Made by a program: the position numbers and the translations under genes. The notes beneath the pieces are model-generated. The model was given only the letters and a program-made list of their open reading frames with translations, did no database searches and had not been told where the DNA came from. Shown piece by piece: positions 1,055-28,908 of a DNA stretch of 32,000 nt. This DNA is from Paramicrosporidium saccamoebae KSL3 (lineage: Eukaryota; Fungi; Cryptomycota). The stretch's first letter is position 1, and each line of letters starts with the position of its first letter. The stretch spans positions 30,100 to 62,099 of the forward strand of contig MTSL01000149.1 in assembly GCA_002794465.1 (NCBI GenBank), in the 5' to 3' direction.

Positions 1055-1414
1055 ATGGATGACATTCTAAAGTTGTTGGATGCAAAGTCTGAATAGTGGT
1101 ATTTGGCAATCAACAGAATCTTTCAGCATTTCCAGGAAGAAAAGTTTGTTCTACAGCTGCCTCGGAGGGAACTCGGGAAATTTGACGCAGCCAATATTAT
1201 ACAGTGTCTAGAGATTTTGTTCAATGGTATTTTCACCCGAAATCTTGGTAAATGCGCCAGCCACGGCACGAAAACCTTGGGGTCCCACCGAATAATTGCC
1301 ACGTTTGTGGATCTTGAGGGGCCTGATTTCGTTCTTTGGATATTCCTGACCGAGAGATGTTGTGATTGGATGCGTCGCATTACTAAAGGAGCGCTAAAGA
1401 TCTCAGTCTCCTAA
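1055..1414 (+). CDS. Small hypothetical protein (~109 aa), one predicted 30-nt intron (1087-1116)
   Basis: ATG 1055 (MDDILKLLDAK) joins the 1103-1414 ORF frame after removing GTCTGAATAG...AACAG. Divergent from RVB1. No family recognised. Confidence 0.45.
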
Positions 1415-1528
1415 GACGTGATACAACTAAATAGATGGTTTGCAAGTCCGAGCGCCTTTAATTGACTATATTTAGCAATTCATGCGCGGGCTCCAAGAAG
1501 ATCCACGGCGAGTCCTCAACAACCCATC

Positions 1529-2284
1529 ATGTTGCGTGTTGACGTTGTAGTTGTTACTCTTCATTTGCTACGAATTGTGGGTACATTGAATGCTCTCTTA
1601 GTGATCTACTCCATAGTGGATGACTTTTTCTCTCTGGATTTATTGTCTACGGTTTGGCGCAGAGTGGTGGCGACAGTCGCAGCGGCCGCCATCTTCAGAA
1701 TGGCAACAACGCTGAGTCTTGTGCCCAGACTTCACATCGTGTGGGTCTGGGTGATCATCGCCACCGGTGCCCCCACCTTTCGAGGCGCATCAAAACCTAT
1801 TACTGCCTTGGCGATGTTTGCGGCGATTATGGTATTCATATGGTTGAACAAACAGGTCAATAAGCATCTGTATAACAGGGCTCGAGTGAGGAGAATTTTA
1901 TCAACTGTTGAATGGTCAAGTCCTATACTGCCACCCACAAGGTACATGCTCGTTGGGTCTCGAATGAGTTTCTTGGAATTTGTTGTTCCCCTTTGCTCGA
2001 GTACCATATTTGCCTCGGCAGGAGCAGGTGACATTGATAGTTGGACTACGGCCTTTCTCATTGGGGTCGGTATTATAGCCCTAACCATAACCGCTCGCTA
2101 CCGTGGGTTCATTGCTGCTCTTCTATTCATGTTTGCCGGATGGGTCTCATTAACATTCTGGTGCATTAAATCTAGCTCAAGCTCTGATGACGATGATTTC
2201 GAAATTCTTTTGCTGATCGCCGAAGCATTAATATCACATTTTATGGTGGCATACGATATCGGCATCTACTTTGGAATTTATTGA
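1529..2284 (+). CDS. Hypothetical polytopic membrane protein (251 aa)
   Basis: Single long ATG-initiated ORF with roughly 7-8 hydrophobic stretches and a short S/D-rich loop; no family recognised. Confidence 0.65.
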   Translation: MLRVDVVVVTLHLLRIVGTLNALLVIYSIVDDFFSLDLLSTVWRRVVATVAAAAIFRMATTLSLVPRLHIVWVWVIIATGAPTFRGASKPITALAMFAAIMVFIWLNKQVNKHLYNRARVRRILSTVEWSSPILPPTRYMLVGSRMSFLEFVVPLCSSTIFASAGAGDIDSWTTAFLIGVGIIALTITARYRGFIAALLFMFAGWVSLTFWCIKSSSSSDDDDFEILLLIAEALISHFMVAYDIGIYFGIY

Positions 2285-2459
2285 AAACTCTGATTGCACC
2301 ACGTAACTCGCAAGTTCAACAGCTATAAAAGTTATTCTGGCTCTCTATGAAAGATACTTCCTTTTGAGATTACAACATTGATGCAAATCTCTTTGTAAGA
2401 GTCGCAAGATCAATGATCCGATTGATACCGACTATTACCTACAATTTCTCATTATAAGA

Positions 2460-5219
2460 TTAGCGTCGCCAGTATTGGGCCCATTTGTGAAGTGTCTCGA
2501 ATACCTTGGGAAAGAGAGCGGTCATGGACTCGTCTATAAGCCGCTCTAACGCTAACAACGCATCTAATTCCTCCAGATCCAGCATTAGCCGATCGTGCAC
2601 ATATCGAGTTCCGACCGGATCTGAAGACAGCGCCAGAAAGGATATCAGTAGCCTTGCATGGCGCCGAAGAAGTGAGAATGCTGCAAAACAGAGCAGCTTG
2701 AAGCGATAGAACAGTGGGCCGGTAGGGCCTCCCATCGTCTCGACCATCTCTTTGCACAGCTTCATTGGAGGAGGAAACGGCTTGGGATCGTTGCCGAACA
2801 AGTAGGAAAAATCTACATGAAATATTCGTCCGTCGCGAGTCAGCAAGAGATTGTCAAGATGCCTATCACCAATTCCAAGTACATATGTGAACACGCAATA
2901 CCCAGCTATCCAGTGAGTAATCGGAAATGAAGAGTACCGCAACTTTTCACAAAGTTATCTAAAACCTCCTCGGGGGCTGATGCGCTGGGAGGAAGATTTC
3001 CGCCGGATGAGGAGCGCTCAACAAGGTCAAACGTCGAAGCGAGACTTGCTAAGGAGGGGTTCATAGATGCTGCGCTCAAATAAGCCAGAACGCTGCCGCC
3101 ATAGGCAGCAATGATGTTGGATAATGGCTCAGAGGGGATAAATTCGAGCATTCCCTCTGTCAGTGATAAGGCGATACATCGATACGGAGTGACTTTTAGA
3201 TCCAGACAGTTTCGTTTCCAAATCACGTCCATCAATCGGAGCACACCCAAGATCAAAGCGTCCTGACGCATGTCCTCACCGGCCTTGACAATGATGGAAT
3301 GTTCACGAATGTCCGTAGTCACAAATGACACCTTGACCGGCATCGCAGTGCTCTTAAATATCAGCAGCTTGTCAGGCAGAGTCCCAGTCACCTTAATGTT
3401 AACATCATATGGGAGTGAAAGCGTGGTGAATGAGAGAATGCCGTTCTTTGGATCACTAGTAACCTCCTTTAGTAGTGATATTCTCTGGTGCCGATTCAGC
3501 CGCACCAAGCGTGTATCTCTAAATAGCAGTGACATTTTCTTGAACAAGTGCTCCTGTTTGAAAAGTGACTGCATTAACTGGGCCGTTTCTACAGTTTTCT
3601 GAAATCGATGCAGCAGCAAACCCAGCAACCTTGCAAAGATATTGTCGCGAGATTCTTTTCCTGCAGAAATTTCCTTGGATCGCACCTTTAACTGCCAGAA
3701 TAGTAGTTGTGCAAACGATGGCCATTCCAGTGCTTTTTCGACGAGAAAATCACCCAGGAGATTCACTGCATTCTTGGCTTGCTTGACGCCCTCCTCGTCC
3801 CCTTCTGCATCCGGATAGAAATCTTGGTAGTGCGAGATACGCTTAAAGTACTCTAGCATGCACGGAAAGATGAGGGTCATCATGTCCAGATCCATAGAGT
3901 AAATACTGCGAGAGAATGCCGCTGCCCAGATTAAATTCACGTCTTCAGACAGAATTGGTCCTTCCACGGACATTAATTCCAAGCAAGTCCATGGTGATGG
4001 CGGGTCCCAGGTGAGCAGAACATCTCGTATCATTTCCACCTCTTCCCTGTCTTCCCAATCGACAATCTGTACAACTTTTGGCAGGGCCTACCCAAATCAA
4101 TACGATGAAATGCCTCTGTACATGTTCGACATTTCTAAGCCAATAACGATATTTCCAAAACATTGCTCTATTATCCGGGGTCCAGTTCCATGTTATCGGC
4201 CGCGCTAGCAATTCCTAAAAGTCCAATTCCAGTCGCTCCGTTATACCATCAAGTATTCATAGGCCATGGCAGAGGGCTCGTGATCCCGTGGATCATCGTG
4301 AACAGTCCGTCTGTACTTTTTCCAATATTTCTCAACAGGGTCCAGCCCCATTTCTGATTCAGCGTCAACAAAGGACTGATCAACAACCTAATTGATCATG
4401 AAAACTTGGGGAGAATACATATTCTTCAAATTGAATCGGCTGAGTTAGGCGCGGAAGCTGAACAAAGACATACATTCGACGCGATTGTTCCGCCTCACGA
4501 CGCTGCATCTGGCCGATCGCATCGGGATGGATTTTGCTATGAAACGCTTCCGGTTCAATAAAGCCATCTTCGTAATCTTTCAAGAGCTGCTACGCGGTAA
4601 GGCGATTACGAATGTTACCTGTTCAAGAAGATTGAGTTTTTGAAATTCGCCAGAAAGGCTGGAATAATCTGGAATACCGTCTGTTTTGCAATTGCTAGGA
4701 TCTGAAGGAAACTCTGCCGGGCTCGTCCACAACATTAACTTGTAATGCCCTTGTCGGAGTATATGCTTCTGCTTTTCCGTCGTGTTGAATAAATACAGGG
4801 TGGTGCCGGCCAGAATCTTTTGGGTGTCACGCTGCACAAGACTCAGAATTAAACAGCTGGTGGGGTTCATTTCATCAATTCGGCAGCCAAAGTCCACCTC
4901 TTCTCCCCATACCGGCTCCCGTCCATTCCTAAACTGTAGGAGAGAGGCTGTCGGTACTGCTGTAAGATGGAGCGCGTTTCAAGCGGGCCAAATATTATCT
5001 CCCCACCATGTGCTAGTTCCACTTGCCAGCTCAACTCGAGCGGACTACAGAGTGAATTGCGAGGCAATATGCCTACTCATCAGACTCGACTCCAAGTGCC
5101 CGTCCAATCGGTCCGATTAATGCGTCTCTACAGAAAATTACAGATATAGGGAGATTATACATTTTAACAATAACGTGATGGTCAACATTGAGAGACGACT
5201 TGACGGGAACATTGTCCAT
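2460..5219 (-). CDS. VPS34: Class III phosphatidylinositol 3-kinase Vps34 (~835 aa), 8 introns
   Basis: Introns at 5128-5160, 5045-5076, 4929-4957, 4590-4618, 4388-4418, 4215-4246, 4088-4121 and 2906-2937. The spliced product has the C2 domain (REPVWGEEVDF), the helical domain, and the kinase motifs KAGEDMRQD, GIGDRHLDN, FHVDFSYLFGNDPKPFPPPMKL, ending in HKWAQYWRR. Confidence 0.95.
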
Positions 5220-7234: not shown

Positions 7235-8042
7235 CTACATCAATGAGCTGGGAGCTACCAGACGCTTGCCCCTAGCCCCGACTTTCACGTCACATGATGG
7301 GTAAATCCACATCTGATACGCCACCCCCGAGTCGACAATCAGCTGGATGACACCACAAAGAATGAATTGGAGCGGCGAGTTGCGGGCGATGAAGAAAAAG
7401 GTCTTGAACGCATCTCCCAGAAACCATGATCCCAGCAATTCGGGCCTGCCATATTAGTTAAGGATAGATGTAGGTACCTCAGACCACCGGTGGCTTTGGC
7501 TTTCCAATTGCTGTAGAATTGCGGCATCGCCAGAGTTGACTCAATCATCAGGGCAAGTCCCCCCACCGCCTCGGTAATCCAGACGGATCCAAAAATGAGC
7601 TTGTTGAGGATGGTGACGGTGGCAATGGAGAACACAAATAGTCCCAGAAACGCTAGATATTCGCCAAAGTAGTCCCATTGCCAGAAATTTTCCATAGCAA
7701 ATCCTATAGGTGAGTGTAAACAATCCTACTACCTCGAGTAACATCATAATTATGCTTCTCACTCTTGCTCGGACGGTTCTTGAGCTGGACCCTCACAATC
7801 AACTCTAAAAGGACAAGCTGAGCGGCTATCATCATAACACTCTGACAGAGCAGGGTGAGTTCGAATCCCTTGAGAAACCAAAAGAATACGCGCAGGATGT
7901 TGGCGGAAATCAAAATGAAGCAGACGAGGGGGGAGAAGCCCCCTGGATCCTGTGAAGTCCTAATATTCATGTACTGCGGAATGTAGCCCACGATGGGCCC
8001 AAAGATAAGTCCCAAGCAGAGGAGAAGCTCCAGGAATGTCAT
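7235..8042 (-). CDS. ANY1: PQ-loop membrane protein, PQLC1/SLC66A2/yeast Any1 type (~248 aa), introns 7704-7732 and 7446-7477
   Basis: Two PQ loops (GYIPQY, LAMPQF), GFSPLVCFILISANILRVFFW, NFWQW, WFLGDAFKTFFF; splicing restores the frame. Confidence 0.85.
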
Positions 8043-8129: not shown

Positions 8130-9092
8130 ATGAGAGTCGCCCCGTTGTCCCTCCTCTTTGCTATCTTTGGTAATGTCCAGTCTGCTCAAATGAGGGACCG
8201 TGACATTGAAAAATGTGTTGCGTGCCATGGCCTGGCCAACCATGTGGTGAGTCGTTTGGCGGACACGGAGTCCCGCGCCAACGAGGAAGTGTATATTGGC
8301 AAACGTTTGGATGCCAATGGAAAGGAAGTTCCTAGCCGCGTGATCCGCTATGGAGACTCGTAAGAGCGTTTACTTGAACTTTACTAATCTCATAGTAACG
8401 AGAGACTATTGGACGTTTTGGAGGGTGCCTGTGAGGCCAATTCCAAGAAAGCCCGTGTAACCCATTCTTCTTTTGACTAACGTTAGTGTAACGAGTTCCT
8501 TCATGAACGCGAAGATGAAATTTCCACCTGGTTCCACGAGTCTCGCCGGACAGGCAACTTTTTCAAAGAGGTCTGTGAGGCTCGCATTAATGGATGTAAT
8601 GCTCAAGTGGTGCAAGAATTCTTGGCAAAGGCATCTAAGAATGTTGAAGTTGAGGATGATGTGCCCAAGAAGGAGACCCCGAAAGCGGCGGCACCCAAGA
8701 CCGAGAAGAAAGAGACACCCAAGGTTGAGAAGAAAGAGACACCCAAGACTGAAAAGAAAGAGTCCACTGCACCCACCTTTGATGCTGTCGCCATTGTTAA
8801 AAAGATTGTGAACCGCATCAAGGGCAACATGATTCGCATCTACAATCTCTCTTCCGAGCTTCAGCGTGAGATGGTGCCGATTATTAAGACCAAGAACTGG
8901 GAAAAGCTCAAGACTACCCTGAAGAATAAGGACTTTTACCAAAAATACTGGATCGTCTTTGCGGCCTTTGCATCGATGATCTATTTGCTTGCGTCGTTTG
9001 TGGAAATGATTTTCGGCAAGTCGGGGAAGAAGGTACGTACTGCTGGCACTGCCAAGCGTCGTACTGCGGTAAAGTCCAAGAAGGAAGAGTAA
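8130..9092 (+). CDS. Canopy/CNPY-like saposin-fold ER protein (~298 aa) with C-terminal TM helix; introns 8360-8395 and 8457-8486
   Basis: Signal peptide; CVAC...KRLDANGK...RYGDSNERLLDVLEGAC...CNEFLHEREDEI...VC...GC gives six Cys in saposin spacing. Then a K/E/T/P linker, TM segment YWIVFAAFASMIYLLASFVEMIF, and C-terminus KSKKEE. Confidence 0.75.
8694..8765 (+). repeat. 24-bp coding tandem repeat x3 (PK[T/V]EKKE[T/S])
   Basis: cccaagaccgagaagaaagagaca / cccaaggttgagaagaaagagaca / cccaagactgaaaagaaagagtcc. Confidence 0.9.
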
Positions 9093-9245
9093 TTTCAAGA
9101 ATTTGAATATGCAGAATAAAAGGTTGTGTTAATGAGATTGTGTGGGGGGTTTGTGGGTGGATGAGATGAGGTGTGAGCGAGACGGGCGTGATTGAGATTT
9201 GTGTAGATGTTAATTATCGTTGGTTTCTATATATGTTATACTCTC

Positions 9246-9377: not shown

Positions 9378-10531
9378 ATGCGGCATAGTAACAACTGGGC
9401 AGTTTTGGTGTGCACATCCACCTTTTGGTTCAACTATCGACATGTCGCCAATGTACTCTCCGTTTACCATATTATCAAGCGACTCGGTATTCCTGACGAC
9501 CATATAATATTGATGCTGGCCGACGACATGGCCTGCAATCCACGCAACCCTATCCCGGGTGCCGTATTTAATCATTACAACCATCATCTGAACGTCTATG
9601 GCTCTGATGTCGAAGTGGATTATCGTGGCAGTGAGGTTACGGTAGATAGTGTTTTGCGGCTGCTTACTAGTATCCCACAAAACATATGGAATGATTTGTA
9701 GACCGGCTGCCAGTGGAGACTCCGCAATCAAAGCGGTTGGCAACAGATGAACAGAGCAATGTGCTGATTTACATGACGGGACATGGCGGGGATAATTTTC
9801 TCAAGTTCCAGGACCAGGAGGAGATTAATGCAAGGGACCTAGCTGATGCCTTTACTCAGATGCACGAACGGAGGAGGTATTCTCAGTGTAAATTCCGTAT
9901 TAACCTTGCCAGGTATAACGAAATCCTACTAATGATCGACACTTGCCAGGCTAGCACTATGCACGACCACATTGTGGCCCCCGGAGTCACTGCAATTGCA
10001 AGTAGCATCCGTGGCGAGTCCTCCTATTCCGTAACCAAATCCACCTTCTCACAGTTGTAGTATCAAGTCGACGATGAGCTGGGGGTGGCGGTGCTGGATC
10101 GTTTCACATGGGCACTCTTAGAGTTTACCAAAAATATCAACTCGACCTCCACTGCCACTGTGCAAGATTTATTCGACTCGCTGGATCCCAAGTTTCTCTC
10201 CTCCCATCCTGATCTGAAACAGAGTGATATGGCAACCTCACCTTCCGAAGCACGAATAGTCGATTTCCTTGGCAACGTGCGGACCGTGGAGACGGATGTC
10301 GACCCAGTCTTCTTGCGGGACGGGGTTGAGCTGGAAAAGTTTACTCAGACGCCAAAATTCAAAATTGTGTTGGATGAGTCTCTGTCTTTGGAACAACAGG
10401 TTTTGGGGATTCCATCGAGAGAGTTTTTCCTGTTGAAACCGTCCCAGCCTCTCCTGAGCTCAGTGTTCCCCATGTTTGTATTTTTGATAATTTCATACTC
10501 TTTCTACAAGGCAGTACGTCGGGCACAATAA
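9378..10531 (+). CDS. GPI8: GPI-anchor transamidase catalytic subunit (C13 peptidase; PIG-K); introns 9670-9701, 9877-9912, 10031-10060; true N-terminus unresolved (possibly ATG 9207)
   Basis: [51 protein letters not shown], catalytic YMTGHGG and [16 protein letters not shown]-terminal TM helix. Confidence 0.93.
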
Positions 10532-10578: not shown

Positions 10579-11845
10579 ATGGGCGCATGCTTGGCTTGTT
10601 GTGCTTTGGACGCAGGTAATGGGTTGGCTGTCATGTCTCATTCTGCCAGGATGTGGACTTGTCTCGGGCGCTGGCAGCATGATCCTCGGCTGCCTTCCGT
10701 GGAGTAAGAGTAGAGGTGCCCGTTACATGAATGCGGTTGTATTCTTCCTCTACTGTGCACTGATATTCTCCGCTCCGTATTCTCACGACAATGGCTGATG
10801 ATTTAGGTCGTGGTGTGGATATGTGGCCAGAGTGGCTCCCATAAAGGGGATAAAATGTGATGCAGACTGCTACACATTTTATACTGTTTACCGGCTCGGC
10901 TATGCACTGGCGCTGTATCACCTGGTCCAAACAATGGCCTTGATTGGCGTGGAAGATGGCTCCAATCCACGGGCAATCATTCAGAATGGCTTCTGGCCCG
11001 CCAAGTTGTTACTACTAGCAATATTGGCAGTGGGCAGTCTATGGATTCCGCATTGGCTGATCGATTACATGTTTTATCCAACAGTTTTCCTCGGATTCTT
11101 GTTTGTATGTGTGCAGGGAGTATTGCTGGTGGATCTGGCATTTAACTGGGCAGAGGGCATGCTGGAGGGAGCGTCAGACGGAAGTGCCATCTATCAGTAT
11201 TTGATCATCGGCTCCACTGCCATCCTCAATTTAGCAATCATCGGAGTGACCGCTTCAGTGTACTTGTATTTTGAGCGCAATCTGGAGCGGACTTTGATGA
11301 CAGTGACCGCTCTGATCTTGGTTCTAATGACCGTTTGCTCCGCACTTCCATCGGTCCAGGAAAAATCGCCCAGTTCAGGAATCTTTCAATCTGCGGTTCT
11401 CGGCCTCTTTTCGCTACTAGTCATCACCAGCGCCTTTATCAGTAACCCAACCCTGCCCAAGCTGGGCACATCAGTTTCAACCTCATTTCCTGTACTCAGC
11501 AAAATTGTATCGGCCTTTAACATTGTTTTTGCATACTTGGCCGTTGCACAGGTATCGTTCAGCAACACTTCCAGCATATCGCGTCTCACTTCTGACCAAG
11601 AGAATACGACCAGTGATGATGATGATGATGCCGAGTACCATTATACTCTGTTTCATCTGATTTTTGCATTCGCTGCCGTTTACACAGTTCTGTACAGTAC
11701 GTATTGGCAGTACTCTGACGCTGTCGGAAAGGTTGTTGAGAGTGCCTTTGGTTTCTGGACGCGCGTCGTGGCCAGTTGGTTTGACGGGCTGTTGTATATT
11801 TGGATCCTCTTTGCTCCAATTGTTTTGCAAGATTCGCTCTTTTAA
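10579..11845 (+). CDS. TMS1: SERINC/TMS1 family multi-pass membrane protein (~400 aa); introns 10616-10649 and 10777-10806
   Basis: Cys-rich N-terminus MGACLACC, C....VYR, RAIIQNGFWPAK, QGVLLVDLAFNW, SSGIFQSAVL, YHYTLFHLIF, FWTRVVASW, YIWILFAP. Confidence 0.9.
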
Positions 11846-11922: not shown

Positions 11923-12749
11923 CTATGAACTCTTGGTGACTACGATCAGCATAAAGGTAAGTAGCAGCGAGATCAAAACAAAGACGGTCAACAAAATCAG
12001 TTTCCATGTTGTGGCCCAGGACTTTGACGAGAAAGACTGCAAATCGCGATGTTGGTCCTTGAATCGTCCTGCGTTCACCCCTAATGCTAAGTCAGCCTTG
12101 TTCACTATTTCGCGGTCACGTTCCACCAGATCCCGCAGTGCAAAGTTATTGCTCTTTAAACGACGGGCCATATGGACCAATTCGGCAGTCAGTTCGTCGT
12201 GCTCTTTTCGACGCTCACGTGGCCTGTTTGGCTCCTCAGCTACTCGCCAATCCACGTTTGGCTTAGTTCGGTTTCTCGTATACGCCGTTGCCTGTACAGC
12301 GGGACTAGGAATAGCACTATCACGAACATCACCTTCCTGAATCGCAGCTCCATGAGCCGCAGCGTCAGGAGCCGTAGCGTCAAGAGTCATAGTGTCAGGA
12401 GTAGGTGCTACCGGCACAGTTTGTAGTGGCTCAGCATTTGCTACATTTTGTGCTATAATTTCCTGAAGGTGCTTCAGGTCTGTCTCGTTGCTTTACAAAG
12501 TCAGAATGCAAGAGTAGTTGTACCTTTCTAGCTCCTTTTCTATGAGAGCCAGCTCAGCTTCCAATTGCTCCTTTTCCTCGTGAGCACCAGAATGAAGGGC
12601 TGCCCTCAGCTCCACCAACGCCTAGCAAATTCGAACAACAAGCCAAGGTATACGGCGCGTATTTTGGTGACTCGAACCAGTAGACCCTCTGTTGAGGGCG
12701 GAGAGAAGGCGTACCTCTTGGTGCTTTCTAGTAATCTAAATTTTGACAT
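11923..12749 (-). CDS. USE1: ER Qc-SNARE Use1 (~253 aa); introns 12622-12653 and 12491-12523
   Basis: SNARE heptads (HDELTAELVHMARRLKSNN...DREIVNKAD...N..RFK) followed by a C-terminal tail-anchor; spliced N-terminus MSKFRLLESTKRY. Confidence 0.8.
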
Positions 12750-14830: not shown

Positions 14831-17092
14831 TTATTGAGCAGAAATTAGCAATTCATGATCAGTAGCCTGCAGATCCAAATTATGTTCATTCGCAAGATGC
14901 AAAAGACAAATAAAACAGTACGGAACTGAGACGTCCGGCAGCATTTCCTTTGGCATTGAGGTAGCCCCCAGCCCAGAGACGAGGGTGGAGAATGGAGTAT
15001 TTTTACTTGGAAGTGCTTCAATCTCCTCCCACAGGACGCGTTTCAACTCTTGGACGTTGACCTTTTTGGCGCGTCGTGCGTATTGTAAATCGGAAATAAC
15101 TGCGGGCCGGAAGGTATCGACCAGGTCGTTGCCAATTTGCGTATCTGTCACATCAGGCATCGGAGGTTCATCATAGTCACTATATCCACCATCATCAAGT
15201 GGGGCAAACTCGGCAGTCTCTCGAGAATCGACAGCATTAGAGGGGAATCCCGTAGTCTCTTGGAAATTGACAGTATTCTCGGGATCTGCCCAGTATGCAG
15301 TGTCTACCTCACGTGGAATGAGATCGGGCCGGTCCTCGGGCGTCTGCAGTGTGACGCGTCGTTTTCCAATGGTCCAAGAAGGCTTTGTGAACAGTCGAAG
15401 CAATTCTGCTGAAGAGAAATTCAAATCATCCGGCAGCAGGTTGTCCTTAGTTCCGCGTTCGTCCAGGATGCTCTTGGACAGTGTAATGGAGACTGGATTT
15501 GCCTTCACAAAAAGAGTGGAAATGTCTATGGGAGCGGCATCAAAGTCGAGGACAAATTCCTTTTTAGCAACACGTGGCTTGACATCAGCGCGACGGAGTG
15601 AGGGTCGCTGAATCTTCCAATGTTCAGGGCCGGCCCAATTGCGTTGAATCTTGGAGTCGAAATATGACAAAAACGAATCTGCAGTGTCTGCCGAGAATCC
15701 CTGCGTGTCCTCGGTTGTTTGTTGGATGTGTGGATTGTCGTAATGAGGGGACGGCTCGTCCATAAACGCAGATTGTTCCATGAAAGCTGGCTGGTCCATG
15801 AACGCCGGCCTGTCCACAAGAGTGGGTTCATCATACATTCCATCATCTAAGGGAAGAGCCTCATCAAAAGCAGTATAGTCCTCATGAACGTCGTCATCAG
15901 ACTCGACATCCATCTTATTAACTGTCATGGCAGTGAGTTTGGCGACAGTCTCTGACAGCTTTTTGTCCAATTTTCCCAAATCAACGGATCCAAAAGAGTA
16001 ATCAACCAGCGAGGGCAATACAGTCTTGTTTTCCAGATCAGAGAAATGACGTCCATGTGTTTCTAATAGTCGGCTAATGTTGATCATGGACTCATCAGCC
16101 GTTTCTGTGTCTTGCGTAGCGGCGAGACTGGCTGCCTCTGAGGAATCAAACATCAGCCGTCCCTTCTCATCAAGACTAAGAGTGCATGTCAAGAACCCTC
16201 TAGTTCCACTCTCGTCAAACTCGGCGCACATTTTCTTAAAAAGGGGATCGACTGCAAATTCAAGGTCAAAATTCTTTAAATTCAGCGCCTCGAGGGAACG
16301 CTCCAGCGTGTCTACAGCTCGCGATGGTCTCTTATTAGATCGCTGCTTTTTTGACTCGTCTCCATCTACAGTCTCCTCCAGAAAATCAATCTTTGATTCT
16401 ATACCGATCAAACGAGTTATCGAGTGCTTACTTTTACTTCCATCCGCAAGGCCATTCAGCAATTTACCCGTCTCATCGGCAACGGAATCGACTCGAGTCG
16501 CGTAAATCTTTACACATCCATCCAGTGTGCAGGATGCCTTTTGAAAATTGATGGAATCACCGTCGCGGAGAAATGTCAGCTCGCTGAAATAGTCAATCAG
16601 CGACACATTCCAGCTGTTCTTTGCATTAATTTTCTACAAATATTAATCCGCACGTTGGAGAAAAGGTGGTACGTTGTCAGCAGCAATTTTCATCCATTCC
16701 TCAAACATTTTGTTTCGCTGTTCCGCTGTCAATTTTGGTGCTGCCACGGGCTTAATAGCGATATCGGCCATGATTGCACTTGGTGTCAGCGGTGTGGCGC
16801 CCTTTGGTGTAAGCATACTCGGAGGATTTGCCCTCGGTGTGGAGACGGCCGGAGACATTAATGTCTTCTTGGTCTGTTTTCTATTCTTGGCAATCTCTGT
16901 CCTATTCCTCCTCCGTTCGCCCTCATCGTCATTGAGAGGGGTGCGCGGCGGGTTCCGAGTCTCCTCTACCAGTCCCTCCTTCCCGCCCGTGACATTGCGC
17001 AACGGAGTGCGAACAGTGGGTGAGGCATATTCACGGGTCTTCTTGCCAACGACAGCTGGAGAGGGTGTGAAGGGATTGCCTCGTTTCAACAT
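14831..17092 (-). CDS. BRN1: Condensin kleisin subunit Brn1/CAP-H (~730-740 aa); intron 16634-16672, probable in-frame intron 16399-16431
   Basis: Splicing restores FEEWMKIAADNKINAKNSWNVSLIDYF; also NFQKASCTLDGCVKIYATRVDSV, DLEFAVDPLFKKMCAEFDE, NWAGPEHWK, YARRAKKVNVQELK, VPYCFICLLHLANEHNL. The start could be 17134, 17092 or downstream. Confidence 0.93.
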
Positions 17093-17128: not shown

Positions 17129-18150
17129 ATGCATTGGGGAGTAGAGGTCGCCGAAGACACGTTCGGAAAGGGGTTTCTGTACGAGGAAGAGTATGCAACA
17201 ATATTTCCAGCCGTGGAGGCGGCAGCTAATTTGTGTGAAAGCATCGCCGACAACAAGGCTAATACTGCCTCTAGCAAAGCCGATGACACTCCAGTGACCA
17301 GTATATTTTTAGCCAGATTGCGTAATTTGCAGTCGCAGACTTGGCTGCGCAGTACATTCTGGTGAAAGCGATTCAGTCAAAATTTCCAAATGACGTGATT
17401 ATAGCCGAGGAGGATCTTGTCAATGTGACAGAGGACCAGAAGTCTCGTCTGGAGACTGTCTTGAATCAAAGCATAACTGTTCAAAAACTGCCACTGCCCT
17501 CTCTTGAAACGAAACGGTTCTGGACAATTGACCCGATTGACGGAACAAAGGGCTACCTTCGGGGTGGACAATATGCAATCTGCGTTGCATTGGTCGTGGA
17601 CCAAGAAGTACAACTTGCCTTTATAGCCTGTCCTCGCCTTCCCACCAGCTTGTCGGACAGCCTAGCAACACTATTTGTGGCCATCCGCTCCTTGGGAGTT
17701 TTGGAAATGAGCTTCTCAGATGGGGGCCATCGCCGATTAGGATTCGGTCTGCGATCATCAAGCCAGACCCAGCCAATTCTAGCAGAATCCTACGAGTCAA
17801 ACCACACGGACCATCAATTTTCCGAGACATTTTCCCGAGCGCTCAATCTTTCCAAAGAGACAATACGTATGGACAGTCAGTGTAAATACGGAATAGTGGC
17901 CCGAGGTGATGCCCATATTTATTTACGGAGACCGACAAAGCCGGGATATACCGAACGAATCTGGGACCATGCGCCGGGAGTGCTAATTGTGGAGGAGGCT
18001 GGGGGAACAGTGACCGACTTTGAGGGGAAAAGAATAGTTTTTGCGCCTGAAGCAGCGCTATCGCGAGCGGGCGGCATACTCGCTACGAACCTACCGACAG
18101 GACACTCCACTGTCCTCACCGTCCTTCAGGCCATTAAGCACTCAAATTAA
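17129..18150 (+). CDS. MET22: 3'(2'),5'-bisphosphate nucleotidase (Met22/Hal2, inositol monophosphatase family; ~329 aa); intron 17301-17332
   Basis: KADDTPVTIADLAAQ, FPNDVIIAEED, FWTIDPIDGTKGYLRGGQYAICVAL, MDSQCKYGIVARG, IWDHAPGVLIVEEAGGTVTD. Confidence 0.92.
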
Positions 18151-19906: not shown

Positions 19907-22900
19907 TTATTTCTCATGAGCAACTGCAGTTGGGAGCGCAAATTTACGGGGATCAATGGCAACGCATTTGGTGCGCTGCCATGTCTTGTAGATGCCCACC
20001 AGACGATCCGCCAGCTCAAACATATTGTTTCGCAGACTCACTACAATAAACTGCGCATTTCCTGTGCGTTCCCGGATGTAATGGGCCACAATGGAGACAT
20101 TCCGAAAGTCCAATGCGGCGTCAATCTCGTCCATAATGTAGATTGGCGTTGGTCGGTATGCATGCAGCGCAAACACCAAGGCAAGTGAGCTGAGCGTTTT
20201 TTCGCCGCCCGATAGATTCGAAATGTTCTTCCATGACTTTCGAGGCGGCATGACGCTGAAGAGGACACCTTCTGAGAAGGGGTCGAGACTGTCCACCAAC
20301 TCTAGTTCTGCATTTCCTCCCATAGTGATCAGCTGGTACATTTCTTTGAGTTTTGCGGATATTGTCCGGAAACCGTCCATAAACTCGTCAAAGCGCTTCC
20401 GTCTCAGCTCGTCGTAATTGTGACGGACTGCGTCTCGGTGAGTCTCAATGGTGGATAGCTCAGATTGCTGCTCATGGAGAATGGCCTCTTTGCTTCGGTA
20501 TTCATCGAGAATCTTTAGATTAGGACGCGACTGCTCCAATCGTTGCTTAATAGTGTCAATGGACTGTTTGATCTGGGCCAGGTTCTTTGCAAATTCGGCC
20601 AATTCAACCTCCTCGTATATTGACAGTACGGGTAAAGGCTGACTATGGTCAATATGGTGAAGACGGAGATGTCTCGTCTCTTCCCTGCACGATGCAATCA
20701 ACCTTTCCAACTCGATAATCTTTGACTCATCAGCTTCAATAGCACAGCGGTGTTCATATTCAACCTTGCGGAACTTTGAAACAGACTTGCTCACACTGTC
20801 CAGGGAATCTTTCAGTTCTTGCACCTTGTCACTCCGATTGTCCAAAGTGTTTTGCAGTTTGCTAAACTCTTCCGTGAGCGACACTGCTTTCATGGTGGCT
20901 TCCGTCACGCGCGAATCCAGCTCTGCAAGCTCATTCTCGATTTTTCCAATTGCCGATTCATCGCGCTGTCCAGATCGCAGAGCCGTAAGACGCTTCTCCA
21001 AGGCAACCTTTTCTTTGGCCAATTCAGTTTGACGACGTTCTCCATTCTCAATCTGTTCCTTCAGACCGTCCACTTTGCTGCGCTGTACTTTATATTTGAG
21101 TCCTCCGGCATCAAGAATCTGTTGTTGAATCTTGGAGACGGCCTCTTCGATTGGCACCATCTCTGTTCGAATGGCAGAAATGCGTCCTTCCGCCGTCTCA
21201 ATGTCTCTTGCCAATTTCTTTCGTTCTTTCTCATCATCGCTGGAGATGGTGTGTTCCGCGACCTGGGCCAATTCGTGCAACCTCTTCTGGATCATTTCCA
21301 GTTCAACCGGAAGAGATTCCAACATTCCCTTGAGCAGAGATAATTCGGCCTCGGTACGAATCAGCTGCTCTTCATTGTCGGCGAGTGCAGTCTTTTCCCT
21401 TCCAATGGAAGCAGTGACCTGCTTCAACTCTTCTTGGGCTTCTCGACACTTTTCCTGAAGCAGCTTTACTTGCTCATCACTCACCTGCTCTCCTTTGAAT
21501 TGAGTGCCCATCCCTCCTCGCCTCACTTGTCCTCCGCCAGAGACGGTTCCGCTCATTTCAAACAGCTTTCCATCAACGGTGACAACACGCCAGCGTTTCT
21601 TTCCATAAGCCCACGCCTGCGCCTCACCAAGGGAGGAGGCTACCAATGTGTCAGTAAGCGCAAAGTACATGGCATCCACAAAGCGGTCATTTCCAAGTCT
21701 CACCAGATCAAACAGTCTCTGCGCACCAGTGGGAAGATCGCGCGGAGGCTCACGCATGGCAGCTCTCATCTTGTCCAGAACAATAAAATTGGCACGTCCC
21801 ACATTGTTGCGTCGCAAGAATTCAATGCATTTCTGTCCCACATCGGTAGTGTCTACCACGATATGATCGAGATAGCTGCAGGCAGTGGCGATGGCAACAT
21901 CGAATTGGGCGTCAATGGCTCCAAGATCGCCGAGACGACCATGGATTCCCTTAATACGCCCCGACTTTGACTCTTTCATCAATGCCTTGTAGGAGGCACT
22001 TCCAGATTCATTCTGCTGCATTGATGCCATTGCCTCGGCAGTTGTTGATTGCAAAAGCTGGAGTTGTTTGGTTCGGTTGCTATTTTCTTCCTCGAGACGC
22101 TTAATATGTTCGGCTATTGTCTCTAAATTGCGTTTCATTCCCTTTCTCTGCTTCTCAAGTGTTGTCATTTTGCGTTCAGCATTTGCCACCTCTTCCCGCA
22201 CCTCTCCACCACGGGTAGTGAGCTTTAACTGTTCAATCTTTCCCACCTGACCCTTTTCGTCAATTAATGACAATGCCGCCTTGGAGACATCCAGTTCACT
22301 CTGAACAACGCGTAGCTTTTCTTGCAGTGGAGCCAACTCTTTCTGCTTGGCGTCCAGTTCCTTCTGATGCTTTGCGGTTACTCCTTTGAGGGATGAGCTG
22401 ATCTTGTCCAGCTCGCCACTAGCTTTTTCTAATTCAGCACGGCTGCTTTCCATTTCGCCATCAAGACGCTTTGCAGTGACCGAGGAATCTTCGATGCCTC
22501 TCGTCAGCTCAGCTTCCAATTTTGAACTCTAAACATGAGGCCGCATAAAAGAGCTTACGTCAGCCGATTGCTTGGTCAGCGATTTCAACTTATTCTTCAA
22601 GTGCTTGCGCGTTTCCTGCATTTTTACATCATTCTGCTCCAAAGCGGACAGTTCAGCCTGCAGTTTGCGAGTCTTTTTCTCCAATTCCTACAAATGTCAA
22701 ACTCGATTAAATGGTCAGGTACGGCTGTCTCGGCAGATGCCTCTCTGAGACTATTTTCCAACTCTTCGGCCTTTTCCGATGCTGCCTGATTCTGATCCCG
22801 CTCCCTTTGTAGCTCAATCTTTCTGGCCTCCACCCGTGTTTTGGTTTTGACGAGGTCCTTCTCTGACAGCCAAATGGTGGACTGTAATAGCTCGGACCGT

Positions 22901-23754
22901 TTCTCAGTCTGTGTATTCTCCTGTCGCAAGTACGACTCTGCCTCTTCCTTTTCTCCCACCAATGCTGCACATTCTCGTTCCGCTGCTCTTACCCTTAGGA
23001 ACTTGTCCGCATGTCCCGCACTGGCCTGATCCAACTCTTCTGCCGTCTTGTTGATTGACTCGATATATTGGTTGGTTCCAATAATGTCCTCCAGATATTC
23101 CAACAGGCCCTCTTCGTGTTCCGTGGCGCCTTTTGGCTTCATCATGGCAATAGCCTCAACCTCTCCTTGAAGAATAAGGAAGCGTTTATGGTCAAGATCG
23201 ATTCCATGGCTGCGGAGAAGGGCAGTGATTTCAGTATAATTGCTGGAGGCACCGTTTAGAGAGTAGACATTACGACTGTTACGCCATGCCGTCCTCGCCA
23301 CCACCAATTCTGTCCCAGGAACAATCTGATACGATTCACCGCCCTAAAAGTCAGCGACATTGGGCAAAAGCTTACGAAATCTTGGATGCGGTGAAAGTGA
23401 ACCTCAACTGTGCACGACTCTACCTCTGTAAGGCCCTCAGAGACGTGTATGAGGTCGGCCAGCTTTGTCTGTCGCATTTTGCGCGCACGATATCCGAGCA
23501 CAAACATAATGGCATCGATGACATTTGATTTTCCTGATCCATTAGGTCCCACAATGGAGGAGAATGACTATAATTCGTAATCATATATAATGGATACTTA
23601 CTTTGTGGAAGGGCCCGATTTCCTGGCGACCAGCATATGACTTGAAATTCTCTGCCACAATTTTGTGGATTATAAGGCGGTCAGTAGGTCCAGTATTAGC
23701 ACGGGCATTGGTATCAAGTTCATCGACTTTAGCAAGTGCTTCAGTGCTTAACAT
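19907..23754 (-). CDS. SMC4: Condensin ATPase subunit Smc4 (~1238 aa); introns 23568-23601, 23344-23375, 22688-22722, 22529-22558
   Basis: ENFKSYAG, Walker [37 protein letters not shown], hinge [13 protein letters not shown], signature [11 protein letters not shown], Walker B/D-loop [11 protein letters not shown]. Confidence 0.97.
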
Positions 23755-23925: not shown

Positions 23926-25211
23926 TTATGCTGGAGGATAAAAGTTCATAAATAATACAGATCCAATCAAAGCATAGCCTAAATTTACCCCGACAATTGC
24001 AGATTTGACCCTGTCTGATCCGGTGGTAAAAAAGTGCGCCCAGGCCCAATATAATACTGGCTGGAATGAAAATAACCGAGCAATGATCTGGATATGGACA
24101 ACAATGATAGAATACACAAGTAGAAGGAATAGTAGAACAAAGTGTGGAAGCATAATGTCTCGCAATAAAAAGCTCTTCTTGGACGAGTTAGAGAAGGCAC
24201 CCAATGATATAACTCTCCTCCAGTCTGAATAAAAATACATCCAACAAGCCGAGGCACACAACGTGACGACCGGCCAGGCGATCAGGAAATTTGGCACCTG
24301 GGACAGCTTCCAATACCGAAAAGCGCCGACATTCCAATAGTTTTGTTGGACAAAGCTGTAAATGTTTGGAACAGGGTGGGCACACCAGGGACGAGTAGGA
24401 TTTGGAACACAGTAAGAATGGTATCCATAGTACTGAAATCCCAAAAACCCAGCCGCTGAGATTATAATAGCGAGCGATTCGCGAATCAACACTCGCACTC
24501 CGAGACGACCTTTGGCAAGATGCATCCACAGATCATACAGAAAAAATCCTACCAGCACTATTCCATTTGATCTGGTCAGTCCTGCCAAGCACCAGAGTAC
24601 CGATGCTAAAATGCGCTGTCGCTGATAGAATGCTAACAGTCCCGCAGTAGTCAAAAACGAAAACAGGCTTTCGGCATATCTATCATATTAGACATACCCC
24701 CCAAAAATACAGAGCCGTCTGGAATGGATACGCAACGCTCAGCGTGGCAAATGCTGCCGAGACAAAGGCAAAATGTTCGTCAGCACCAAGTGTCAATGAC
24801 AACCTACCAAAATCAGCAAATAGTCAATTATAACCGAAAAATATTGACGACTGTAAAGAAATGACACAGATTGGCAAGCAGCACGCCAACAAGTAGACAT
24901 CCCGTCAACATTGGCACACCAATCCATTTCAGACACTCAGCCCCCAGTCTCATCATCGCGGGGAGCAGTGGAAAGAAGGCGTGCTGATTCTCAAACTCGT
25001 AGCCGTGCATTGCAATTTGCAGAAAATATGCAGAGTCCCATCGTGCAAATGGCGCTAGGACGGTGCTTAAAAGGTCAGACGAGTCGACTTGAGAGAGGAG
25101 CAGCTCTGTGTGGCTGTTGTACGGGTATAGAAAGCGAGCACTGAAGAGAGCAAGAAGCAGCGAGAGTCCCTTTACGAAAAGAAAGAGGCGGAGTAATCTG
25201 CCCGCATACAT
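23926..25211 (-). CDS. GPI18: GPI mannosyltransferase 2 (PIG-V; ~407 aa); introns 24804-24834 and 24680-24710
   Basis: RWDSAYF..IA.HGYEFENQHAFFP; spliced TALYAESLF; TRSNG, YSFVQQNYWNVG.FRYWKLSQVPNF, IIARLFS.QP.LYW, FMNFYPPA. Confidence 0.92.
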
Positions 25212-25245
25212 TGTTGGTCGAGCGTGAACACCCTTGCTGAATGAG

Positions 25246-26315
25246 ATGACGAGGGAGGAGGAGCTCGATGGTTTGGTCGAGGAAGCTTGGAACACAAATG
25301 GTATCAAATGATGACTCGTTCGCTCATGTTAGATGCATATATTAATGAGGAGCTACTAAGGCGAATATTAGTACTGTGGAAGCCAGGACAGAACACTGAA
25401 GACGATGCTCTCATTCTAGTTAAAGTTCTGCGGTCGTTTCAAAGGACGACAGATGATGTCGACTACGCTACTATAGCTCTAGGGTGCCTGCCACAGTGGA
25501 CACGTTTACTTCGCCCCTATTTTGAGGAGGCAAAGATGGCTACTGTGCCACCAACAGTCCTCGTTCGCCAGCAACTAAACCCAACAGTCGATTCTGAGCG
25601 ACTTGGAATCTGGGACAACTCTTGTAGCTGGAGGAAGGATCTTCGCGTCCCAGAGGCTTTTCTGTTCTGCCTCACTTGTCTTTCCGACAGAGCTATCACA
25701 AATTTAGAAGGTGCTAGCAAGCTGATCCCGTTCTTAATCCATCTTGCAGAAGACTATGTACCTGATTTTCGCATCATTGGCGCAAATTGTATAAGACAGT
25801 TCCTGCGAGTTACTGTTCCCAAGGTCACCACGCAGATGCAAATCGACCTGTTATTCCACCAGATCTTGATGAAGAACTTTGCGTTTGAAAGCTTTGAATT
25901 AAAGAGAGTTTCCTTAGAATGTCTTTTACAAGATTTATACACGCTGGAGACGCTGGGCGCCGACCGGCAACTCGCTTGGCTTGAGGAATTGCTGCGTTTG
26001 ATATTGAAAGAGGCGGCTTTTACAAAGGAGACGGATATTGTTTTGTTATATCTGGAAATGCTGGTCCCACTTGTACGGCTACTTGGACCTGCGACAATCT
26101 GCCATTTACAGTCATTGCTCTCTCTTGTTGTTGATTCCACCGGGAACCGTGAACTGCTTGATCGTCTATCCCCGCTATTATTGGCCATCTTTGATACTGC
26201 ATGGCCACGACTGCATGGACACGTAGTGATCATTGAAGAAATCATGTCCCGTTTCGAAGATGCCCACATTGACTCTTCTCTATTCAAAGAACGGATCAAA
26301 TTAATAAAGCAATAA
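25246..26315 (+). CDS. TTI2: TTT-complex subunit Tti2-like HEAT protein (~345 aa); probable intron 25301-25332 (alternative start 25308)
   Basis: LIPFLIHLAEDYVPDFRIIGANCI, LGPATICHLQSLL and TAWPRLHGH resemble conserved Tti2 blocks as I recall them; not searched. Confidence 0.65.
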
Positions 26316-26391
26316 TTGTCCGAGTGTGAGATGGTTAACTGCGGGCCAGGGATATCAATAAAGGGCCTTTACTCATAACCTCACATTGTTG

Positions 26392-28908
26392 ATGCTCTCA
26401 AAAGGGCAGCGTCTTTTCCTGGAACAATTCACTGCCACTCCAAAGAACGACGACAAACAATGGGAGACGCTCCTTGGGATTGCAGATTTCATGGTGAGGA
26501 CAAGCCAGGTCCTGGATGCAGCTCTACGGACCGTGCTAATAAGTCAAAGCTGTGTGGACATCCGGTTGTCTGATTGTGCGCGGAGAACACTCGAGTCCGC
26601 TGTCAATTATGCATTGCGGTCACTAGAGTCGGATGATATAATGGAAGTGGGTTTGGTATTTGCAAATCTCACTAAAAAGAATGGCATGAAGGGCGCGGCC
26701 AGCTTGCAGAGTGGCGCCATAAAGCGTCTCCTGAAAAGACCGACTGTCAATGAAACCATTGTAAAACTTTTAATGGCATCAGTGGATGAGATGAGTGAAT
26801 TTCTGGCAGAGATTGTCTCTAATAATGGCTGGTCTCAGCAAGTTGTCAATTTGCTGACGCAAATCGTGACGAGAATGGATTATGATGCAAGGAGCAATAT
26901 AATAGAGGGGCTCCCTGTGAGCCAGGTGGATGAACTACCTTTTTTGATGGACCTGGTCAAGAATATTGGTTGCGATATCGACATGATCTTGCGCTTGCAT
27001 GACCATCTTGTGAAGCATAGATATCCATTTCAGCACTGTGAACGCTTCCGGATGCTGTTGGAATGCACACCATTGACAAACAAGTGGGCAATCGCCAACA
27101 TTTGCTCCAACGCTGAGCGGTTTATTGTGCAAAGTCACGACGGGAGTGGCCTTACTGGGCTGGCCAGTGTGATTTCTGCATTGATCGTGGTTGACAGTGC
27201 AGACATTGATCGTGTTTTAGGTGCGCTGTGTAGGGCAATTGAAAAATGTACGCATTTTGATCCGCAAATGGTCTCTGTGCTATCCGAGCTGGTCTGTTCA
27301 ACAGTCAATTTGCATTTAAAATCCTCCCAAGATGCCTGGACCGCTATTTGCCAGAACGCATCCGCTTTGGAATTGATTTTGGATGCTGTGATGACCTCTC
27401 CGAAGCCGTGGTTGCTGTACAATCAATCTCTGGCCACGGGACTCGACTTTCGTGTGCCACAGCAAAGTTCCATTCGCTCTAAAACTCTAGCCAGTATTGC
27501 ACATTTGCTATCATGTACACTTCGATCTGGCTGCCCATTGAGCAAGGTAATAGATGTGGTCATTTTTATTCATCAATAGGAGCCATGTGATACTCTCATT
27601 CTCTTGATAGGCGTCTTGGTAAAGGCACCATTTTCATCGACTGTTTCAGGTCCTGCAGACTTTGCACAGTCAAATTATCCATTGATCTGTAGCATTTTTG
27701 CAGACTTGTGTTTGTATCAAGTAAGAAATTCCTGGAAAACCTGGCGACAGCTTACCACAGAGTACTGCTTTGCTGCTCCATGGATTTTGTATGGAAAGAC
27801 TGTATGGCACATGTACATCCCTCCGGCATTGTATCGGCAATGGTTAAGCCGGGCGGATGTATGCCCCACAGAAATCGCTGATTTAAAGACTGGCTTCAGG
27901 GATCAGATTATCGGCACTGCGATTCTTGATCTGCTACACTGGAATGTACCCGATACTGGCGTGCTTCTGGCGCAAATGCGGCATGTTTTTAGTTTGAGCA
28001 AAGATTTCACAGAATTGATCCGAATGGAAATTACCAATTCTAAGATTTGGTCCCTGTTTCCGCAGTGTACACTGGCTAGTTTGGACTTGATTGTCGTCGG
28101 AAGGGAACAGCACGCACTGAAAGTCATCTTGGGAATTTTGGATTATCCGTGGGAAAACTACACTCTAGAAGGCATCATTATCAAAATGATAAAAGTCTTT
28201 TGTGAAAGACAGTGCTTCTCTTTCAACGTCTTTACCTCCATTGCCAGGATTGTACATGCCACCGGCTCCTCGGCTGCAATTGATGAACTGGATTTGCTAC
28301 TGGACTCGGTCTGTACATTAAATGCTCCCATTTTTCCTGCAACAGTACAGATGACTACCGTCGTGAGCGACTTTCTGCTAACCCGTCTCACTAGCATCAT
28401 CTTTGCCAAACCCCAACTATCAGCCTGCGACAACATGCGTTCTCTCTTGCGAGGGATCTTGAGAGCATTACCGCAGTCCTGGATAGCCAAGTTCCTGACT
28501 AACCTGCTCCCCTTGCTCGTTGATATGCAAGCGAATGATTTTTTATCCTTGTTTCGGCGGTTCGTTACGCAGGTCGTCTTGGAGCGACCAGTTCGGCTGC
28601 ACGGCCTCCCGTTAGGGTTCTTTGATATAGATGAAGACCTGAACGTGTCTCACGCTGCTGATGACGTCACAGATGATGGCAATGATGAGCTGCACGTTCA
28701 TATACTTACTCCCATGCAATGTTGTTCCAAAATGACAATTGATTTGCGGATTCTTGGAGCAGTATATGCTGATTTTGCTCGACCGGGACAAATCCTGGTA
28801 CTTGCCAAGGCTGAAGAATTGGGCTATAAGGACGAAGACATGGCATCCAATGGACTGGTCGCTGCGTGTGGCGAATATAATCCATTGTTTGACATAATCC
28901 TACGCTGA
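26392..28908 (+). CDS. Large alpha-helical (ARM/HEAT-like) hypothetical protein (~827 aa); intron 27547-27579 joins the two track ORFs
   Basis: A 33-nt GTAATA...TAG phase-0 intron fuses 26386-27579 and 27604-28908 in frame; the sequence is Leu-rich and helical; family not recognised. Confidence 0.7.

Follow-up and report, generated by a model that had tools for sequence, protein, structure and literature searches.

The stretch of DNA analysed here (the window, 32,000 nucleotides) belongs to contig MTSL01000149.1 of the Paramicrosporidium saccamoebae assembly GCA_002794465.1, in whose record each position equals the window position plus 30099, and our subject is a set of 31 very short candidate introns found in 13 of its genes. 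The composition of the window is even, with a guanine plus cytosine (GC) content of ca. 48%. When compared with Pfam, its stop-free pieces match the domains of eukaryotic housekeeping proteins, i.e., TIP49, a split VPS34-type PI3-kinase, UDP-glucose dehydrogenase (UGDH), PQ-loop, peptidase C13, Serinc, Use1, PI4-kinase, condensin Cnd2, inositol monophosphatase (IMPase), a TFIID subunit, SMC, PIG-V, Tti2, a mechanosensitive channel and RRG7. An SMC exon of 873 amino acids (aa) is 100% identical to the protein deposited as "Smc4 [Paramicrosporidium saccamoebae]", which places the DNA in a lineage related to microsporidia; an earlier note on this DNA, made from the letters alone, had named microsporidia among the organisms with introns of this size. 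The genome that hosts the tiny introns is the compact nuclear genome of an intranuclear parasite of amoebae, from the sister lineage of Microsporidia. It has been described as a bin from a metagenome, with 7.3 Mb, 47% GC and 3,750 genes, annotated by MAKER and Augustus trained on Rhizopus (Quandt et al., 2017; PMC5701793). The main text of Quandt and colleagues contains neither "intron" nor any word starting with "splic-" (PMC5701793).

The list of introns was rebuilt independently of the coordinates given in the earlier note, by combining Pfam matches of the stop-free pieces, a dynamic-programming gene finder based on codon usage and homology-guided spliced alignment, and GT-AG joins between adjacent open frames provided additional candidates. 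The only rule that the protein-to-genome aligner had for an intron was GT...AG, the length being free from 15 to 300–400 nucleotides (nt). The gene finder was used for hypotheses only. With a high intron penalty it merged units of tiny intron, exon and tiny intron into long false introns, and with a low one it produced spurious antisense genes. The resulting 31 candidate segments are 29–39 nt long (mean 32.2, mode 32), and eight of them are located in VPS34. All have GT and AG ends, with GTA donors in 29, GTC in one (that at 1087) and GTT in another (24804-24834), while the acceptors are TAG in 25, CAG in five and AAG in one (12491-12523). All these figures reproduce those of the earlier note, and the two segments that it quoted are exact, 8457-8486 reading GTAACCCATTCTTCTTTTGACTAACGTTAG and 23344-23375, on the minus strand, GTAAGCTTTTGCCCAATGTCGCTGACTTTTAG.

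A set of GT-AG segments with such a narrow range of lengths is far beyond chance. The 29–39 nt class represents 3.9% of all the GT..AG pairs of 15–300 nt, and the 19 introns chosen by the length-free aligner measured, without exception, 29–36 nt. Along the same line, we counted 45 GTA..TAG pairs of 29–32 nt where the neighbouring lengths predict about 24. A tally of all the GT..AG pairs that join reading frames showed no signal, as open frames frequently overlap. The density of introns is ca. 1.2 per kb of coding sequence, and 13 of the 19 modelled genes are interrupted if two unsupported candidates (see below) are counted, 11 if they are not. Phases 0, 1 and 2 are represented by 13, 7 and 11 of the 31 introns, respectively. 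Retention in the transcript would lead to a premature stop or a frameshift in 28 of the 31. The length is a multiple of three in 12, and three of these are free of stops, so that 11–12 residues would be added to the protein if they were retained. Of the 19 curated spliced models none has an internal stop; TIP49 runs off the window end, and the other 18, which are complete, all finish at a single genomic stop codon.

Comparative evidence that these segments interrupt genes comes from two uncultured relatives that conserve the gene order of the window over most of its length. Relative A is represented by the Joint Genome Institute (JGI) metagenome contig Ga0377238_001527 (loci L005 and L007, 45% GC) and relative B by the Logan contig SRR13704943_6052 (loci L002 and L004, 60–65% GC). 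In addition, a short contig (L001) codes for a UGDH 93% identical to that of the window. We found 19 introns placed exactly where orthologous intron-less open reading frames (ORFs) or fungal homologues run continuous, four of them being visible in a plain tblastn search as exact insertions of 10–12 codons. When the spliced proteins were aligned to those of the relatives, eight further introns coincided in codon and phase with a tiny intron of the relative itself. Altogether 27 of the 31 are supported. The introns of the relatives are of the same class, 29–43 nt in A and 36–44 nt in B, and orthologous introns differ in length by up to ca. 12 nt, indicating that the band is narrow and the length is not fixed. 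The presence or absence of introns varies at many positions among the three genomes which, together with the finding of the same class in the relatives, points to a trait of the clade that has been kept under ongoing intron loss. We also observed that relative B, more GC-rich (60–65% vs. 45–48%), has fewer and slightly longer introns.

The signals at the ends and in the interior of the 27 supported introns were compared with those of 2183 GT..AG pseudo-introns with the same lengths. Position +3 was A in 26 of the 27 vs. 18% of the pseudo-introns (p ~1e-18), and position -3 was T in 23 vs. 15% (p ~8e-16). A YTRAY motif with its A located 6–12 nt from the 3' end was present in 12 of 27 vs. 6% of the controls, and the relaxed version YTNAY, at the same distance, in 20 of 27 vs. 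9.7%; overall, the p values of these tests ranged from 1e-8 to 1e-18. The branch signal is therefore degenerate yet positional. The earlier note had called the branch motifs degenerate, and this stands. Its statement that some introns have none to be seen was too strong, the relaxed YTNAY failing to appear in only seven of the 27 supported introns. Positions +4 to +9 are near random and positions -7 to -5 are T-rich, a U-rich spacer of 3–5 nt replacing a true polypyrimidine tract. The introns are also C-poor, with a T content of 0.36 vs. 0.27 in the window. None of the 31 introns pairs the U12-type 5' site /RTATCCTT with the TCCTTAAC branch site, and this type of intron was discarded. The segment 7446-7477 does contain TCCTTAAC, but it starts with GTACCT, and the close relative L001 has not retained the motif. 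Rfam and transfer RNA scans of the window retrieved nothing, including no small nuclear RNA gene.

The eight introns of VPS34 (minus strand) all have GTA..TAG ends. The first three, 5128..5160 (33 nt, phase 2, in frame and stop-free), 5045..5076 (32 nt) and 4929..4957 (29 nt), are bridged by an uninterrupted ORF of 181 aa in relative A (L007 11327-11869). The next two are both in phase 0 and have counterparts with the same ends in relative A: 4590..4618 (29 nt) corresponds to an intron of 29 nt at the same codon (after residue 169, phase 0), and 4388..4418 (31 nt) to one of 35 nt, also at the same codon (after residue 226). The last three, 4215..4246 (32 nt), 4088..4121 (34 nt) and 2906..2937 (32 nt), are bridged by an ORF of 627 aa (L007 12084-13964). 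The 2906-2937 intron is located inside the kinase domain, and the pieces at both of its sides match Pfam PI3_PI4_kinase.

In the PQ-loop gene (minus strand), the intron at 7704..7732 (29 nt, GTA..TAG, phase 1) has counterparts at the same codon and phase in relatives A (41 nt) and B (37 nt). The second one, 7446..7477 (32 nt, GTA..CAG), is spanned by an ORF of relative B that has no intron (L002 9203-9640). Its orthologue in L001 is also 32 nt long and is 75% identical, compared to 86–87% in the flanking exons; it keeps GTA and CTAATATG, and the acceptor changes from CAG to TAG. A candidate third intron, absent from the earlier list, could be either 7248..7282 (35 nt, GTC..CAG) or 7255..7310 (56 nt, GTG..TAG). 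It would switch the frame to a C-terminal ORF of ca. 55 aa ending at 7085, which in L001 is open with the same stop and in relative A has a weak colinear match. Since L001 lacks the GT of the 35-nt option, the 56-nt one is favoured.

On the plus strand, the gene designated g8190 has an intron at 8360..8395 (36 nt, GTA..TAG, phase 2), found at the same codon and phase in relatives A (37 nt) and B (44 nt), and another at 8457..8486 (30 nt, GTA..TAG, with TGACTAAC) that appears as an exact insertion of 10 codons, with stops inside, when compared with an intron-less ORF of relative A. The peptidase C13 gene (GPI8-like) downstream contains three. The one at 9670..9701 (32 nt, GTA..TAG, phase 1) is bridged by a single ORF of relative B, and relative A has an intron of 43 nt at the same codon. 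The intron at 9877..9912 (36 nt, GTA..CAG, phase 2, in frame and stop-free) is again bridged by the ORF of relative B, and at its codon relative A has an intron of 32 nt which, not being a multiple of three, must be spliced. The last one, 10031..10060 (30 nt, GTA..TAG, phase 0), is an exact insertion of 10 codons with respect to the ORFs of both relatives. In the C13 model the first codon is ATG 9378, directly at the conserved domain, and there is no signal peptide. Upstream there is a hydrophobic ORF rich in Cys, Phe and Leu that starts at ATG 9207 and contains a degenerate repeat (CTTTCTGCACTCTTTGTGC...). We looked there (9207-9371) for a signal-peptide exon and no class-typical intron joined it to the gene; a 5' exon joined by an atypical intron may exist.

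The two introns proposed in Serinc (plus strand) are less certain. The first, 10616..10649 (34 nt, GTA..CAG), yields an ATG-initiated, Cys-rich N-terminus, and the second, 10777..10806 (30 nt, GTA..TAG), is probable, a paralogue aligning from 10811. No Serinc orthologue was found in the loci of the relatives, and spliced alignment with 70 Serinc homologues produced N-terminal structures that disagreed with one another. With the hidden Markov model of the family, the model with tiny introns scored 174 bits and one with an intron of 127 nt scored 177. A start at ATG 10934, the first in frame, was rejected, as it scored 144 bits; this loss of 30 bits and the homology that extends further upstream indicate that introns are needed here in some form.

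Use1 (minus strand) has an intron at 12622..12653 (32 nt, GTA..TAG, phase 0), residues 4–65 of the spliced protein being contiguous with the intron-less relative A, and another at 12491..12523 (33 nt, GTA..AAG) that is bridged by an ORF of relative B and has a counterpart of 34 nt at the same codon in relative A. The AAG acceptor is present in both genomes (..TGTAAAG in the window, ..TCTAAAG in relative A, L005 20333-20366). As the two Use1 proteins share only ca. 38% identity (90 of 240 aligned residues), this non-canonical acceptor is conserved. In Cnd2 (minus strand), 16634..16672 (39 nt, GTA..TAG, phase 0) is the only short GT-AG segment joining the two pieces of the gene, and introns are found at the same codon in relatives A (34 nt) and B (40 nt). 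The second Cnd2 intron, 16399..16431 (33 nt, GTAAGC..TATAG), is in frame and stop-free. In the earlier note this segment had been tentative together with 1087-1116 and 25301-25332, and it is the only one of the three that gained support, from relative A, whose intron at this codon and phase has a stop in frame. The single intron of IMPase (17301..17332, plus strand, 32 nt, GTA..CAG, phase 1) has equivalents at the same codon and phase in relatives A (35 nt) and B (36 nt).

SMC4 (minus strand) could be compared with fungal homologues too. The intron at 23568..23601 (34 nt, GTAAGT..TAG) derives from the alignment with the Haplosporangium and Batrachochytrium SMC4, and its codon also carries an intron in relatives A (30 nt) and B (40 nt). 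Across 23344..23375 (32 nt, GTAAGC..TAG, with GCTGAC), six homologues and an ORF of 1187 aa in relative B are continuous; 22688..22722 (35 nt, GTA..TAG) is bridged by all the homologues tested and the ORFs of both relatives; and 22529..22558 (30 nt, GTAAGC..TAG) is an exact insertion of 10 codons when compared with the ORF of either relative. Three of the SMC4 introns are spanned by ORFs of the relatives without interruption. The aligner, run with six homologues, chose the first three introns wherever the alignment reached them, and 22529-22558 with five of the six, Batrachochytrium taking an alternative of 27 nt. In PIG-V (minus strand) the introns at 24804..24834 (31 nt, GTT..TAG) and 24680..24710 (31 nt, GTA..TAG) are both bridged by an ORF of 428 aa in relative A and by another in relative B. 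The g26392 intron (27547..27579, plus strand, 33 nt, GTA..TAG, phase 0) joins ORFs of 385 and 442 aa, and relative A has a GTA..TAG intron of 34 nt after residue 385.

The remaining two candidates, both on the plus strand, are unsupported. The one proposed for Tti2 (25301..25332, 32 nt, GTA..TAG) has the GenBank start, ATG 25308, inside the segment, and the N-termini of the relatives discriminate poorly, with a slight lean to the model without intron. The other (1087..1116, 30 nt, GTC..CAG) is located upstream of an ORF (1097-1411) for which we found no Pfam match and no counterpart in the relatives, and which the codon-usage gene finder did not consider coding. The neighbour at 1529-2284 is a separate single-exon gene, its homologues beginning at its ATG. 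It codes for a protein of 251 aa that belongs to no Pfam family and has only 19 homologues among 1.8 billion representative proteins, the best with 55% identity. The whole region between VPS34 and TIP49 (window 1040-2460, 1.4 kb) is absent from the syntenic relative A, where the gap measures 150 nt.

Intergenic spacers are in general extremely short (window 17129-17134, 10531-10579, 11845-11923 and 27576-27580). There are 47 nt between the C13 stop and the Serinc start, and the best start codons of the divergent genes Cnd2 (start 17134, minus strand) and IMPase (start 17129, plus strand) overlap by 6 nt. Overlapping starts and spacers of this size imply either that promoters lie inside the neighbouring genes or that at least one of the starts is wrong.

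The published gene models illustrate what happens when introns of this class are overlooked. The GenBank Smc4 (19907-23754, minus strand) can be mapped exactly onto three exons, with introns of 258 and 179 nt between them. Two conserved exons (23376-23567 and 22559-22687) are skipped and a tiny intron is partly translated; every SMC4 homologue tested prefers the model with tiny introns to the GenBank one. For Cnd2 (14831-17134, minus strand) only one solution fits the official model, and its introns measure 54 and 59 nt. In other cases genes have been fused, such as PQ-loop and UGDH in a single model of 727 aa (5496-8042, minus strand), or g8190, C13 and Serinc in one of 990 aa (8130-11845, plus strand), and the model of the channel (29067-31368, plus strand, 683 aa) runs across an antisense RRG7-like gene. 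Truncation affects Use1 (11923-12749, minus strand), an intron-less model of 155 aa vs. 253 in the curated one, and VPS34 (2460-5219, minus strand), 629 aa vs. 835, the latter aligning end-to-end with that of relative A. At PIG-V, a glycosylphosphatidylinositol (GPI) mannosyltransferase (23926-25211, minus strand), no gene had been called. In total, when the GenBank models are compared with the curated ones, at least eight genes of the window are mis-modelled or chimeric, and, of the official intron lengths that we were able to recover, not one belongs to the 29–39 nt class. The prediction of the earlier note that standard gene finders would mis-annotate this DNA is thus borne out. The default minimum intron length of Augustus is about 39 nt, which would explain the pattern of the annotation.

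Taken together, we consider it very likely (with a probability of about 0.9) that the segments represent ordinary spliceosomal introns of the U2 type (GT-AG), reduced to ca. 32 nt (29–39), a trait that would extend to the whole clade; the proposal of ultra-short introns of spliceosomal type made in the earlier note is in this way supported. The set of signals is minimal, with a GTA donor followed by nearly random nucleotides at +4 to +6, a degenerate yTnAy branch site with its presumed branch A 6–12 nt from the 3' end and ca. 18–26 nt from the 5' end, and then a short T-rich spacer and the TAG acceptor, less often CAG and once AAG. When the segments are taken out of the sequence, ORFs colinear with their orthologues are restored. 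Recognition could proceed by intron definition over the whole unit of ca. 30 nt, with GUA, yUnAy and UAG acting as a composite signal, and the narrow band of sizes might result from a deletion bias working against a steric or functional minimum. The earlier note went further and proposed a recognition guided by length, a suggestion that we would soften, since the positional branch-like motif and the strong GTA and TAG signals mean that recognition need not rest on length alone.

Several points weigh against this interpretation or restrict its reach. Removal from RNA by the spliceosome is deduced here from genomic DNA. Two of the candidates (1087-1116 and 25301-25332) are unsupported and the two in Serinc are just plausible. 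The three introns that are in frame and stop-free (5128-5160, 9877-9912 and 16399-16431) could be retained in a way invisible to translation-based surveillance. The approximately 20 genes of the window are a small sample, and an intron of 120 bp has been reported in the S23 gene of P. saccamoebae (PMC6349667), indicating that lengths are not purely tiny over the whole genome.

Other explanations have to be weighed against the same data. The segments might never be removed, the genes being pseudogenes or the assembly containing frameshift and stop errors, with GT..AG ends by coincidence. Most segments do break reading frames, as decay or errors would, and the assembly was binned from a metagenome (PMC5701793). 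However, random lesions would not all measure 29–39 nt, with GTA in 29 of 31, YAG in 30 of 31 and a positional branch-like motif. Moreover, similar elements appear at the same codons in two independently assembled relatives, and the exons are clearly conserved at the protein level, all of which makes this explanation highly improbable. More improbable still is that they are elements excised at the level of DNA, like the internal eliminated sequences (IESs) of ciliates, and not introns of the RNA. A size of ca. 30 bp and ends containing TA (GTA...TAG) superficially recall the IESs of Paramecium, but the boundaries are canonical GT-AG, the branch-like motif is at the canonical distance and the positions are common to GT-AG introns of the relatives. 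In the fungal and microsporidian branch, nuclear dimorphism is not known, and it is to this branch that the lineage belongs, judging from the closest named matches and the genome description (PMC5701793).

A different case is that of real introns that are inefficiently spliced, being either a burden or a regulatory throttle. We regard this as rather unlikely, and it would be compatible with spliceosomal introns of ca. 32 nt rather than a replacement for them. The short introns of Encephalitozoon cuniculi are spliced in less than 20% of the cases (PMC6349667), the donor and branch signals are weak here as well, and an annotation supported by a Trinity assembly of transcripts still missed these introns (PMC5701793), which fits junctions that are retained or poorly covered. 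On the other hand, the premature stops and frameshifts expected from the retention of 28 of the 31 would fall on essential single-copy genes (SMC4, condensin, VPS34 and the GPI anchor pathway) with up to eight introns per gene, so that a low efficiency per intron would leave almost no functional messenger RNA.

Tiny introns as a kind are already known elsewhere; in Paramicrosporidium they are undescribed, our search of the PubMed Central (PMC) Creative Commons and bioRxiv literature having found no description of this size class in the genus. P. saccamoebae is among the very few sequenced lineages that stand between the intron-rich rozellids and the nearly intron-free Microsporidia, and serves as a reference in reconstructions of gene loss, spliceosome reduction and intron loss. 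We would give roughly even odds to the broader view that this clade represents an undescribed intermediate toward the near-intron-free state of microsporidia, having first compressed its introns to ca. 30–40 nt (GTA, yTnAy, TAG) at about 1 per kb of coding sequence, and that fusion, truncation or outright absence would affect a sizeable fraction of the 3,750 gene models, as expected of an annotation unable to model tiny introns. If this were true, gene counts, orthogroup analyses and some of the losses inferred for the Paramicrosporidium lineage would need revision, and, should the pattern hold throughout the genome, comparative studies of this lineage may have taken annotation artefacts for "absent" genes and odd domain fusions. 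The data suggest that, in the microsporidian lineage, introns can become miniature before they are lost. They also provide an independent example of a narrow band of intron sizes combined with weak signals, which bears on the minimal requirements for intron recognition. The practical consequence is a poor reference annotation for a phylogenetically important genome.

There are several known systems with which these introns can be compared. In Blastocystis (human subtypes ST1, ST3, ST4 and ST7) a compact genome with spacers of tens of bp contains introns of ca. 30 bp (PMC10690189). As in the window, they are numerous and confined to a narrow band near 30 bp, and there too annotation inserts wrong introns and merges genes (PMC10690189). 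However, in this unrelated lineage, a stramenopile, almost all are exactly 30 bp, unlike the spread of 29–39 nt found here, and the missing stop codons that are a feature of Blastocystis contrast with the genomic stops at which all 18 complete models of the window end. The ciliates Paramecium and Nyctotherus have introns of ca. 25 bp at high density (PMC5014332, PMC2633312). They are likewise tiny, but shorter and in AT-rich genomes. In Paramecium, stop-free introns with a length multiple of three are reportedly depleted, as Jaillon and colleagues are said to have described in 2008. No such depletion of multiples of three is visible in our small sample (12 of 31, three of them stop-free).

Mikrocytos mackini, with introns of 16–17 nt whose narrow band has been explained by a deletion bias against a functional minimum, is another reduced intracellular parasite in which introns have been shortened without outright loss (PMC10245619). 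Mikrocytid introns are half the size, uniform and conserved in sequence, whereas those of the window measure ca. 32 nt, with a variation of 10 nt and a degenerate sequence. When the earlier note described the size as near-minimal it was right in that 29–39 nt is short, but Stentor, mikrocytids, nucleomorphs and Paramecium have introns of 15–25 nt (PMC10245619, PMC5014332). The phylogenetic neighbours, E. cuniculi and other Microsporidia, also have small introns in a reduced parasite genome (PMC6349667, PMC10245619). Their introns are very few, mutually similar and poorly spliced, with a conserved 5' site and branch, unlike those of the window, that reach eight in one gene, occupy any position in it and, apart from GTA and TAG, are degenerate. 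The high density claimed in the earlier note holds with respect to Microsporidia (0.01 introns per kb of coding sequence), which are far below the ca. 1.2 per kb found here, a value that is nevertheless moderate and falls below that of Rozella (2.5 per kb; PMC8476143).

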